A program made the position numbers and the translations under genes. A stretch of DNA of 63,769 nucleotides, filler included, from Parasitella parasitica NRRL 2501 (taxonomy: Eukaryota; Fungi; Mucoromycota), in NCBI GenBank assembly GCA_025201805.1. It is 11 parts of 11 records of this genome, joined end to end, with 100 filler letters (N's around TTAATTAATTAA, not from the genome) between each part and the next. Parts side by side here need not be neighbours in the genome. Positions count along the whole stretch, not along the records: positions 45,942 to 51,647 come from MU619274.1; 10 more parts are not named here. The stretch is one strand, 5' to 3'. Positions within the stretch are counted from its first letter, which is position 1; each line of letters opens with the position of its first letter. Positions 46,800-51,647 of the stretch are shown here, piece by piece. The notes under the pieces are model-generated. The model was not told the DNA's origin and did not search any database. It saw only the letters and a list, made by a program, of their open reading frames with translations.

Positions 46800-47619
46800 A
46801 TGCAAGATTCAGCGATAAAAGTGATACACCGTGATGAAAACTGGTTTATCATTGACAAACCGTATGATTGCCGAATTCAGACCTATGCCAATACAGATGA
46901 GTCATCAGGTAAAGACAATTTATGCTGTTCCCTTTTCTTTTTTCGCATGCTGATTGTGTCGCGTACTGTTCATGGTGGAACACAGTCGAGAGCTTATTGA
47001 AAGAGCAGTTTCCTGAAATTGACAAATTCCGCAATGTACATCAACTTGACTACGCAACCTCGGGCGTATTTGTATTAGCTTTGAATAAGAAAGCTGCTGC
47101 TGCTGCTAGTAAGCTGTTCAGAGAGCGAGCAGTAAAGAAAACTTATCTGGCACTTGTCAACGGCCACGTCAAAAAAGATGTGTAAGTCGTCGTGAAATAG
47201 CAGATGGATACACGGGCTAAAAAAAAAAAAAAAAAAAAAGGTATTTTGTAGATCAACCTATAGGTAACGATCCGAACCATAGCTTTAGAATGGCTGTTAT
47301 TGCGTCAGGGAAAACAGCACAGACCAAAATCCGGGTTTTACAGCGAGGATACTATACATTCCGCCAAGAAAAAACTGGACTAGAAAAGACAATTCCTGTA
47401 AGCAAAGTGAGTCTATCACCAATTTCTGGAAGAAGACATCAGTTGAGACTACATTTAAAGCACCTTGGCCATCCCATTGTAGGGGACTTTAATTACGAGG
47501 ATACATATACAGACACATTTCGAATGATGTTGCATGCACATCAGATTATCCTGCCTTTTTCGGAAGAAAAGGAGCTAAACGTAGTTGCAGATGATCCTTT
47601 TGCTGACCTTGTTGTTTAA
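46800..47619 (+). CDS. RluA-family RNA pseudouridine synthase (RPUSD1-like)
   Basis: IIDKP, HQLDYATSG (catalytic Asp), KTYLALV, SGRRHQLRLHL..LGHPIVGD..Y, MMLHA; two introns. Confidence 0.92.
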
Positions 47620-48077: not shown

Positions 48078-49546
48078 TCATTGATTCATAGGCGATCCAA
48101 TCCGTGTAGTTTTTAGATGTCCTCTTCTGTTACCACTGCCTATTTACCGCCTTGTTAAGCCATAAACCACGGTATTGGCAATTTAATTACAATATTTACC
48201 TTGGCTTGATGTGCGATTTACATGCACGATTTGCTGCGGTTCGTGCGAGCCATATTTATCTCGCCGACTGGGTGCAGTTTTACTCCTCCGCAAAGTCACT
48301 GTAGGCGGCGGTAGTTCCAGATCTGCATCTAGAATAGACTCAATGCCTGATCCAGAATAGGAACCAGCGGCTAGCGAGTATATCGTCGAAGCTCGTTGTT
48401 GTGGGGGGTTCGGGCGTTCCTCTTTTATAGCCTTGTTAAAATCTTTGACTGATAGAGAACGATTAAGTAAAGCCGAATGTAAAAGCATATAATATTTTTT
48501 TTTTTTTTTTTTGATTTTACTTTTCGGTGGTACGCTGTTGGATGGCGGCAGAGCGTTGTTTTGGTCTGTTGTATTAGCAAATGTATGCGCCCTTGGCATG
48601 GAAAATCTTTCTTGATGTTCTATCAGAAAAATCAACACTCTTTGCGACTCCAGATAGCCAGCAGGGTTTAGTTCATCATCAGGATGAGATAAAATACCCT
48701 ACATGATGTTTTAATACAAACAAGATGCCCGGTACCTGTACTTACAGGTGCAAATACAGCAGCCAAGCATGCCGTGTCCATTCGTGTGTAATCCTGCGCA
48801 GTGACAAACATCCCCAGCATATCCAGCAGATACAGCAAAAGATATTGATGGGCAATAGGCAGGCATTCGATGACCCCCTGAACTGCCTCTATTTTTGCGT
48901 CTACATTTGGGTATTCTGCAACTAAAATAACAAAGTGCAGATCAATGAGCCAAGGGAAAATAGTGTTTAGTTACAGCAAATAAACACTCAACTGGTTGTA
49001 TCCTTCAGCTTTCGGTAGTATTCCAATGTTATTACAGGCTCGGGCAAGAAGTTGAGAAACCTCTTCATCACATTTGCTGCATCGTGAACTGTGTATCCTC
49101 TCCAATCCAGCTGTGATCCGTAGAGTTCCGGTGTATCAAATATCGACTGTAGCATTCTGATTCTGCGTGAGCTGCCTGATATGCGAAAAATACCTTCGGT
49201 CGTCATGGCTTCCTCTTTCAAAAACGATCCACATTTCGCTATGATGGTTGGTATCGCACCAAAGCACTGCGTCTCTGTGACATCGTCGATATATGAAATG
49301 CTTGAATGAGCATATTTAATCGACTCTACAAGCAATATACCAAAAACGCCTTTGTCTATATCGCCGAAGATCTAGTCAGTGAAATGCAGATTCACAAATA
49401 TACTGTCTGTCCTTACCGACAATAGGCACTCTCATGTCCTTAAAGTTCCGTGCTGAAGGATGTGCTGCTGTGACCTTCCTCCACCAGCCTCTAACAAGCG
49501 CTTTTTGACCTGGAGTGAATACTCCGAGCATCTCGAATGAAGACAT
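48078..49546 (-). CDS. RhoGAP (Sac7/Bag7-like)
   Basis: GVFG, IPTIIAKCG, EGIFRISGS (arginine finger), VHDAANVMKRFL..LPEP; first exon MSSFEMLGVF..GWWRKV; 3' end approximate. Confidence 0.9.
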
Positions 49547-49735: not shown

Positions 49736-50724
49736 TTATTTATCAGATTTGAGCTTTCCGCCATCCTCAAGATAGTCTTTCATGTAGTTTTTAAAGCTAT
49801 GCAATACTTGCTCAGATGTTGTGTCTCTCGCATAGCAATCAATAAATTTGCCTTGTGGATCCATCAAATAGATGAAAATCGAATGGTCTACCAGGTAGTC
49901 ATCATCCGCCGAAACGTTGGGCGGCAGATAAGAGTACACCCGATATGATCGAGCCACTCTTTTCAATTCTTCAGGCGAGCCTGTAAATCCTACCAGGTCC
50001 GGATGGAAATCCTGCACGTATTCACGCACAACATCGGCTGTATCTCTTAATGGATCACAGGTAATGAACACAGGCGTCAATACATTGCCACCAAATTCTT
50101 CCTTGACGGCATCCACAACTTGGGCCATTTTGTCCAATTCCTCGGGGCAGATGTCAGGACAATGTGTAAACCCGAAATATATCATGGTGAATTGGCCGTT
50201 CATAAGCTCTTCAGAGGTTGTGCGTTTGTTTTCGTTGACATTAAACAGCTCGAAAGGCTGTCCAATGTGCGGGCGACCCATGGCTTTGATTGTGTCGCGC
50301 TCACGCTTGGCTTTCTGTGCTCTCAATTTTTCCTTTTCTCCTCTGAAATAAACCACGAGCCCTACGGCTGTCATGCCCAAGACAACGGCAGATTTCCATG
50401 TGAAAGTCTATATATTTTTCGTAAATAAAAGCATAACATGAATGTATATATTGCATTACTTGAGGTGATGGTGATGATGATAGTGGCGGCGGTGGTGGTG
50501 GTGGGGTTGACTTTTGCGCTGTTGAATATAATCTGTTGTGCTTTTGTCTGCAGAGAGGTTGCCCTATCAAACATCTTTTAACAGTTGTTCCCGTCGACGA
50601 GCGAGTGAATAGCTGCACGTGTTAAAATTGCGTTAGTGAATATATACAACTGCTAAACTTTAGGATACATTACGCTAATGGTAGGCTGAGCAATGGCCAG
50701 TCTAGGAATTTTACTTGAAAACAT
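49736..50724 (-). CDS. SCO1: Cytochrome c oxidase copper chaperone SCO1/SCO2
   Basis: YFGFTHCPDICPEELDK (CxxxC), DYLVDHSIF, TM helix, presequence-like first exon MFSSKIPRLA; two introns. Confidence 0.96.
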
Positions 50725-51119
50725 GATAGGTAGTACACTAGTAAAAAAAAAAAAAAAAAAAAAAAAATGTTTGCAAGGCTTGCAATCAGCCGGGCAGCAA
50801 CAGCAGCGGAATCAGAATGAAATGCTTCAGTTGACATTATCTGGATTCCCTCCCTGAGCTGCTCAATAGTAATAGTGTATCCTATCGACAAAATGAAATA
50901 GCAGGAGAGTGCAGATTCTCTATGCTTTGAAAAATCTTGTACAATAAACAGTGCAAGTCTTTTATTCATCAAACTGCATATTGACGACTCTTTGTATTCC
51001 ATCAACCACTTGAAAATACTGTAACGGTATATCAAGCTAAATTCCGAAAGAAGAAACAGATGATTTTGGTTACTTTCTATAAACAATTTATAAATGGTAA
51101 ATGTCACTTACCCAATAGT

Positions 51120-51260
51120 ATTAAAAGGTCAAAGTCAAAGATGCAGCGCTCGATTAATATTGAGTTATCTCCACGTTTTATATTTCTTTACTAACCTTCA
51201 AAGAGTATTGCCTCCATCGAAAGGCGAGCCCAGCATCCGTTTTCTGTACAAAAAAGATAG
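51120..51260 (-). ncRNA. Candidate Fanzor omegaRNA region (boundaries unknown)
   Basis: Position at the ORF 3' end; hairpin GCCTT-TCGATG-GAGGC at 51225-51210. Inferred from TnpB/Fanzor architecture. Confidence 0.4.
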
Positions 51261-51647
51261 GACTAAATTGTTGAATTGTATGCGCTTGGCAGTGGTGGGG
51301 TTTGGGTCGAAGCAGGGAAAAGTTACTCCAAACAAAAGGCAACCAAGACCAGCAAGACCAATTGCAAGTGCTGAGACTTGGTCGCGGCACATTGTCTTGA
51401 AGGCATTGGGGCATTCTGAATTCAAGCAAAGAAATGAACCGGCTGTTCGCTGCATTTTGCCATTGAGAGCAGCCACAGGATGAGGAAGCTTGTGGAAGCA
51501 GAAAACACACGTTTGCGACGTATTATGTTCATTTGTTATCAGCGTAGGTGTATAGCGGCCATGTCGCTGCTGTTTCCAAAACCCGCCAAATCGTCTGTGT
51601 CCCTTGACACGAGAGCCGAATCCGTGTCCACGATCACCGACAAACAT
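51198..51647 (-). CDS. Fanzor1 (TnpB-like RNA-guided endonuclease), C-terminal RuvC-II/Zn-finger/RuvC-III part; 5' portion lost at contig break
   Basis: FVGDRG.G.GSRVKGH..FGG, TNEHNTSQTCVFC (RuvC-II Glu plus CxxC), CLNSEC, MCRDQVSALAI (RuvC-III Asp); open frame up to the gap. Confidence 0.88.
   Translation of the reverse strand: MFVGDRGHGFGSRVKGHRRFGGFWKQQRHGRYTPTLITNEHNTSQTCVFCFHKLPHPVAALNGKMQRTAGSFLCLNSECPNAFKTMCRDQVSALAIGLAGLGCLLFGVTFPCFDPNPTTAKRIQFNNLVLSFLYRKRMLGSPFDGGNTL

Follow-up and report, generated by a model that had tools for sequence, protein, structure and literature searches.

The minus-strand open reading frame (ORF) that terminates at position 51198 of the window (here the whole analysed stretch of DNA, 63,769 nucleotides from Parasitella parasitica NRRL 2501) is the C-terminal half of a Fanzor1 gene of this Mucorales fungus, and it comprises RuvC-II with an alternative glutamate, the TNB zinc finger and RuvC-III. 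Fanzor1 proteins are compact eukaryotic programmable nucleases. In the reading that we consider probable, the fragment is the 3′-terminal portion of a Fanzor1 gene on a high-copy mobile element that lacks TIRs, the copy in the window is internally shortened and either non-autonomous or decaying, and the last ORF codons and the tail downstream of them would encode the omega RNA scaffold. The coordinates of the features discussed below are collected in Table 1.

Table 1. Positions in the window of the Fanzor1 fragment and its parts, of the tail and element end, and of neighbouring host genes.
Feature	Position	Strand	Basis and remarks
Last 149 codons and stop of the Fanzor1 gene	51198..51647	-	RuvC-II alternative Glu, TNB zinc finger, RuvC-III and C-terminal helices; cut by the scaffold gap at 51647
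E40 codon, Fanzor-type alternative RuvC-II glutamate	51528..51530	-	Opposite SpuFz1 E541 in profile alignment; at least 90% conserved; six residues ahead of the zinc finger
TNB zinc finger, C47-x2-C50 ... C74-x4-C79	51411..51509	-	Pfam PF07282 over residues 34-96, E 0.0022, below cut-off; C47, C50 and C79 at least 90% conserved
D89 codon, RuvC-III aspartate in RD..SALAI	51381..51383	-	Aligned with SpuFz1 D606; at least 90% conserved
6-bp RNA hairpin GCCTTT-CGAT-GGAGGC, then AATAC	51210..51225	-	Over the last ORF codons; covariation; candidate first omega RNA stem-loop
Putative intron 1, 47 nt	51149..51195	-	Donor AG/GTTAGT 2 nt past the stop; acceptor ..CGAG/
Middle exon, ~37 nt	51112..51148	-	Bounded by the signals of both introns
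Intron 2, 75 nt, GTAAGT...TTTAG	51037..51111	-	Joint 51036->51112 in run X7 only (2 contigs)
Terminal 21 nt of the element (right end, RE), ending in TATACCGTTACAGTAT	51016..51036	-	Homology to L001 stops at 51015; loose contig ends at 51016
Flank just outside the RE, putative guide part of read-through omega RNA	50996..51015	-	Analogy with TnpB and Fanzor
SCO1/SenC copper-chaperone gene	49736-50618	-	Pfam E 1e-42; ~400 bp downstream of the element RE, same strand as the fragment
RhoGAP-domain exon	48988-49335	-	Host gene; annotated likewise in MU619274.1
Two-exon RluA-type pseudouridine synthase gene	46922-47619	+	Host gene; annotated likewise in MU619274.1

The frame is uninterrupted over its 149 codons and closes with a TGA stop at 51198-51200, just as the sequence-only reading described it. 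All the motifs listed there, i.e., the Gly-rich GDRGHGFGSRVKGHRRFGG block, NEHNTSQTC (which contains E40), CxxC...CxxxxC and RD..SALAI, were found in the ORF. Its leading ATG encodes an internal methionine of a conserved M/I-F-V/I-G-D beta strand, and the frame is still open at 51647, where the piece ends. The piece is 100% identical to its source scaffold MU619274.1 of the JGI assembly GCA_025201805.1, and since 1,094 N adjoin the ORF there, the break at 51647 is a genuine gap of the assembly. A DNA contig of a different run extends 53 nt past this position and translates as ..KKPI-L-FVGDRG, as in relative P0001. The NCBI annotation of MU619274.1 holds solely a 53-aa “hypothetical protein, partial” at the fragment. 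Across 87 relatives, residues G7, G21, E40, S44, C47, C50, N76, C79, R88 and D89 are at least 90% conserved, and the window copy retains both visible catalytic residues and all four zinc ligands.

A phmmer search of 1.84 billion representative proteins with the fragment returned 396 matches at E ≤ 1e-3, 18 of them at E ≤ 1e-30, so the ORF is more than a product of chance. Most of the proteins retrieved are short gene-call fragments, and there are also proteins of 505-975 aa with a RuvC-I motif, FSGTDNG, which was found in relatives P0021, P0004 and L012. Single-sequence searches were less informative: phmmer with the fragment and with the 713-aa relative P0021 gave no match among PDB sequences, and no NCBIfam family was matched by the fragment. 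Pfam PF07282 (Cas12f1-like TNB) reached E 0.0022 for the fragment, which is under the gathering score, and E ≤ 0.01 for 11 of the 87 relatives.

Although the single-sequence PDB search found nothing, the profile search proposed in the sequence-only reading did match a known Fanzor1. A profile built from 12 family members retrieved SpuFz1 (8gkh) at E 1.2e-5, with Cas12f next at E 0.019. In the profile alignment, MFIGD of the fragment family (MFVGD is the corresponding strand of the window copy) lies opposite VVMGD of SpuFz1, NE of the NE.xTSQTC motif lies opposite the DE that contains E541, and RD lies opposite the RD that contains D606. The spacing between E541 and D606 in the SpuFz1 chain is 65 residues, in agreement with the published catalytic triad D383/E541/D606 (PMC11423790). 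A glutamate six residues before the zinc finger, combined with a glycine at the canonical RuvC-II position, defines the “rearranged” catalytic site of Fanzors (PMC10530073, PMC13565253). In the fragment, E40 precedes C47 by six residues, and the canonical RuvC-II strand carries Gly-Asp.

The fold leads to the same proteins. The structure of the fragment was predicted with AlphaFold2 on the 87-relative alignment (pLDDT 86.7) and compared with solved structures. Foldseek placed SpuFz and PpFz at the top (E 5e-3 to 8e-3, probability 1.0), and all remaining meaningful matches were to Cas12, TnpB or Fanzor2. VIA-align superimposed the model on PpFz1 residues 719-844 with Z 9.1 (110 residues aligned, rmsd 3.8) and on SpuFz1 residues 502-633 with Z 8.8; mimivirus Fanzor2 (9b0l) scored Z 4.7. 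A Fanzor2, or IS607-type, element was rejected because of this difference in Z scores and because no serine recombinase was seen at any locus examined. The profile match, the conservation of the residues, the fold and the position of the glutamate thus identify the fragment as the C-terminal half of Fanzor1, and the assignment made from the sequence alone is supported.

Solved Fanzor1 structures include those of SpuFz1 from Spizellomyces punctatus (8gkh/9ce*) and PpFz1 from P. parasitica (9cf0/9cf1), which makes the fungus studied here the source of one of three solved Fz1 structures. Both proteins share with the fragment the C-terminal fold, an alternative RuvC-II glutamate placed six residues ahead of the zinc finger, an RD motif with the RuvC-III aspartate and Gly-Asp at the canonical RuvC-II strand; both are also encoded by multi-copy elements with a conserved 3′ non-coding tail that reaches to the right end. 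The fragment differs from PpFz1 and SpuFz1 in that the structural alignments show 17-18% identity and there is no pairwise sequence match. At this level of identity, it belongs to an Fz1 lineage separate from PpFz1.

The boundary of the carrier was mapped by aligning Logan contigs of four runs (three DNA and one RNA-like, X7) on 50400-51647; contig depth was not used as copy number. Every run contained 4-9 contigs with loose ends exactly at 51016 and unlike flanks, and summed contig depth rose at this position from 30-140 in the flank to several hundred up to tens of thousands. The homology to L001, a 93.75% identical paralogue that, like paralogue L004, is located at another genomic locus, ends at 51015. 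Position 51016 is therefore the right end of a high-copy repeat that carries the fragment. The end motif TATACCGTTACAGTAT also closes the homology in L011, L012, L013 and L014, which represent subfamilies with protein identity of only 59-70%. The Fanzor1 family has been active recently, as contigs that are 99% or more alike make up about half of those aligned in the best DNA run.

On the other side of the assembly gap, the 524 bp directly to its left match, at 92% identity, a region that precedes the Fanzor remnant of L001 and, at 78%, its counterpart in L004; judged from this homology, the stretch is the shared 5′ region of the element. The sequence-only reading had placed both RuvC-I and the carrier transposon beyond the contig break, where they could not be assessed. 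For the former this stands, as the RuvC-I aspartate, along with the WED and REC parts, would fall within the 1,094-N gap. The carrier proved partly accessible, through its RE at 51016 and the 5′ region left of the gap.

When the intact metagenomic element L010 was searched for TIRs, its inverted repeats did not exceed chance level. No target-site duplication was seen at L003 and L001, where both ends are visible, and no recombinase was seen in the loci examined. Bao & Jurka (2013) described Fanzor1 in Mucorales, with ten families in Mucor circinelloides (e.g., MCi-2 and MCi-5), some of them TIR-less and with fuzzy 5′ ends. As far as descriptions can be likened, the MCi families and the window family have in common a Mucorales host, several Fz1 families per genome, no TIRs that can be recognised, 3′ ends that are sharply conserved and 5′ parts that vary or are “fuzzy”. 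Unlike the elements of Bao & Jurka, the window family shows no target-site duplication at the two loci with both ends visible.

Several further observations concern the contigs and the surroundings of the element. In runs X1, X2 and X5, summed depth peaks over the last ~180 nt (51016-51197) and drops toward the 5′ side of the ORF, which suggests that many copies keep the tail alone, as solo ends or 5′-shortened copies. All contigs break in a low-complexity A/T run at 50736-50777, and the depth dip there is an assembly effect, not a deletion. Run X5, which is labelled as a different organism (“organism B”), contains the same flank-to-element junction (50400-51044) without a mismatch; a mislabel, a synonym or a co-culture of the mycoparasite with a host could be the cause. 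The 61-nt GT-AG intron of SCO1 (50613-50673) is removed in run X7 alone, and X7 was therefore taken as RNA.

With the gap estimate included, the element spans ~2.25 kb at this locus. L001 (1.78 kb) and L004 (~1.83 kb) have the same ends; both contain many stops and frameshifts and lack RuvC-I. MFVGD is preceded by ~1.6 kb of coding sequence in L012, an intact relative with 68% identity over the fragment. From L012 and the shared 5′ region, a full length of at least ~2.9 kb is expected, which leaves the window element ~0.6 kb short. No N-terminal Fanzor homology was found by tblastn and tblastx left of the scaffold gap or in L001 and L004, and the shared 5′ region has no similarity to the N-terminal part of L012. 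The gap length is the assembler's estimate, and were the gap ~0.6 kb longer than estimated, the copy could have its full length; if the estimate holds, the span argues for a shortened copy. Most likely, then, the window copy is internally shortened, non-autonomous or decaying, and would not be an active nuclease gene.

The fragment was also compared with six relatives. The family is under purifying selection and has been functional over the long term, with dN/dS of 0.10-0.17 and the 149 codons open in all six. At eight sites of the ORF the window copy departs privately from the family majority, by five nonsynonymous and three synonymous changes, and its private residues V14 and P55 are I and S in the wider family; these substitutions look neutral. 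RNA contigs of X7 match the ORF of the window copy with 0-1 mismatches over 51250-51639, so this copy or a near-identical one is transcribed.

In the best surviving alternative, what the window shows is the end of a complete, intact and perhaps active Fanzor1 gene, the 5′ two-thirds of which are simply unassembled. The open 149 codons with both catalytic residues and four zinc ligands, the upstream extension of the frame in other copies, the closely matching RNA contigs, the low dN/dS of the family and a gap size that is only estimated all agree with it, but it has to contend with a span of ~2.25 kb where at least ~2.9 kb is expected, with two dead paralogues that share the ends of the window element and with private substitutions, V14 for I and P55 for S among them, that look neutral. 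On balance, we regard a full-length gene as possible yet rather unlikely. For the same reasons (the short span, the 5:3 ratio of private changes and the dead same-end paralogues), the suggestion of the sequence-only reading that this is a young or active copy and a candidate programmable nuclease gained no support: an open stretch of 149 codons says little about activity.

Intact, near-full-length relatives were retrieved from metagenomes, and a metagenome scan used a 12-sequence alignment. L012:296-2444 (JGI metagenome contig Ga0164241_10060398) is near-full-length and apparently intact. Its gene consists of 414 codons, a 67-nt GT-AG intron (1539-1605) and a further ~280 codons, and it combines FSGTDNG, the alternative glutamate, the zinc finger and the RD motif with the same tail and right-end motif. 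For bench tests, L012 is preferable to the window copy. In L010:704-4611 (ENA metagenome contig k141_641928), a 487-aa ORF stands ahead of P0021, an uninterrupted relative of 713 aa. This ORF has no Pfam match and is similar to the N-terminal extensions found in the relatives P0094 and P0097 (937-975 aa). Some members of the family may thus be proteins of ~1,100 aa, divided either by an intron or in gene calling.

The scaffold of the omega RNA in TnpB and Fanzor systems extends from the 3′ end of the ORF to the RE, and the guide comes from the flank (PMC10530073, PMC13565253). By analogy, the last ORF codons and the ~183-nt tail (51016-51197) would encode the scaffold of the guide (omega) RNA, and transcripts reading past the right end would acquire the guide from the flank. 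RNA contigs of X7 cross 51016 and continue in flanks that differ.

A hairpin over the last ORF codons covaries among nine diverged loci: 96% of the cells pair, and the covariation of 0.59 compares with 0.31 after shuffling (0/500), slid controls being much lower. One of its pairs is seen as UA, AU, CG and GC, partly through paired synonymous changes. In L013:874-905 and L006:7063-7094, where the ORF stops earlier, the hairpin and AATAC/AGGTAAGT are kept downstream with compensatory changes, and the RNA element seems to be conserved independently of coding at these two loci. The minimum free energy fold of the 245-nt tail was no better than that of shuffled sequences (z -0.18) and did not include the covarying hairpin, and an Rfam search with the tail gave no match at E ≤ 1.

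The tail contains the signals of two spliceosomal introns. AGGT directly follows the stop codon in 11 of 11 loci, within a conserved AGGTAAGT-like donor, and an ACTAAC-like branch site and an AG acceptor of intron 1 are present in most of them (L012 and L014 have no clear acceptor). RNA support for the splicing of this intron is suggestive: a single low-depth contig has its joint exactly at 51196, with four unmatched letters. Intron 2 is spliced in RNA. In addition to the two X7 contigs, its junction was found in a paralogue-type contig with a depth of 525, and it was absent from the three DNA runs. In the 11-locus alignment, the GGTAAGT/GGTATGT donor, the branch site, the pyrimidine tract and the acceptor of intron 2 are conserved across subfamilies. 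The terminal exon that follows is 21-24 nt long among loci and bears the end motif TATACCGTTACAGTAT.

In the published omega RNA of PpFz1, the first stem-loop has 7 bp and is followed by a linker of 10 nt and AGGTAAGC. This order parallels the hairpin, 12-nt linker and AGGTTAGT of the window tail, and because of this likeness the donor-like motif of the tail may also serve as scaffold. The two elements differ in the distance from the AGGTAAGT motif to the right end, which is ~180 nt with two spliceosomal introns here and ~30 nt in PpFz1.

A tentative reading, which goes beyond the preferred one and which we hold to be doubtful, is that the guide-RNA-coding tail is split by two conserved spliceosomal introns and that splicing either builds a short scaffold or destroys it. 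In the former case, the mature scaffold would be composed of the hairpin, ~37 nt, 21 nt and the flank-derived guide. In the latter, the scaffold would be lost upon splicing, and transcripts would be partitioned between mRNA and guide RNA. Bacterial IStrons are IS605/IS607 elements in which a group I intron overlaps the omega RNA of TnpB (10.1101/2023.11.20.567912). In both IStrons and the window element, splicing signals and the guide-RNA-coding region share a few hundred bases at the right end, and by this analogy we hypothesize that splicing and guide maturation could compete in the window family. The introns themselves are of different kinds: the IStron intron is self-splicing and removes the whole element, whereas the window introns are spliceosomal (GT-AG, 47 and 75 nt) and lie inside the tail. 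Spliceosomal introns within the guide region of a Fanzor did not come up in the Fanzor literature that was searched.

Co-option by the host was considered as well. A short C-terminal Fanzor peptide or transcript might have been domesticated, for example for the regulation of the downstream SCO1 gene: the two share a strand, with the fragment ~580 bp upstream of SCO1, and NCBI annotates a partial 53-aa hypothetical protein at the fragment. We find this very improbable, given that the sequence belongs to a repeat with many near-identical copies and a sharp transposon end, that nothing suggests selection on the window copy and that a RuvC half without RuvC-I has no known activity. That the ORF is a chance frame or belongs to an unrelated zinc-finger protein is refuted, even with the fragment as a single sequence matching nothing in the PDB and PF07282 under its cut-off, by the profile match to SpuFz1, the structural matches to PpFz1 and SpuFz1 and the conserved motifs, all of which point to Fanzor1.

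Fanzor1 has been known in Mucorales since 2013, and the lineage described here belongs to that known kind. The window copy, which is probably truncated, provides no new enzyme. Beside PpFz1, P. parasitica has in this family a second Fz1 lineage that is both very divergent and very abundant and the right end of which has now been mapped, and near-full-length L012 and L010 from metagenomes provide testable proteins. If splicing does destroy the scaffold, the tail would correspond, in a eukaryote and with spliceosomal introns, to the intron/omega RNA conflict in bacterial IStrons. The conserved, used splice sites and the covarying hairpin raise the testable question of how transposons of eukaryotes obtain their guide RNAs from transcripts of Pol II.
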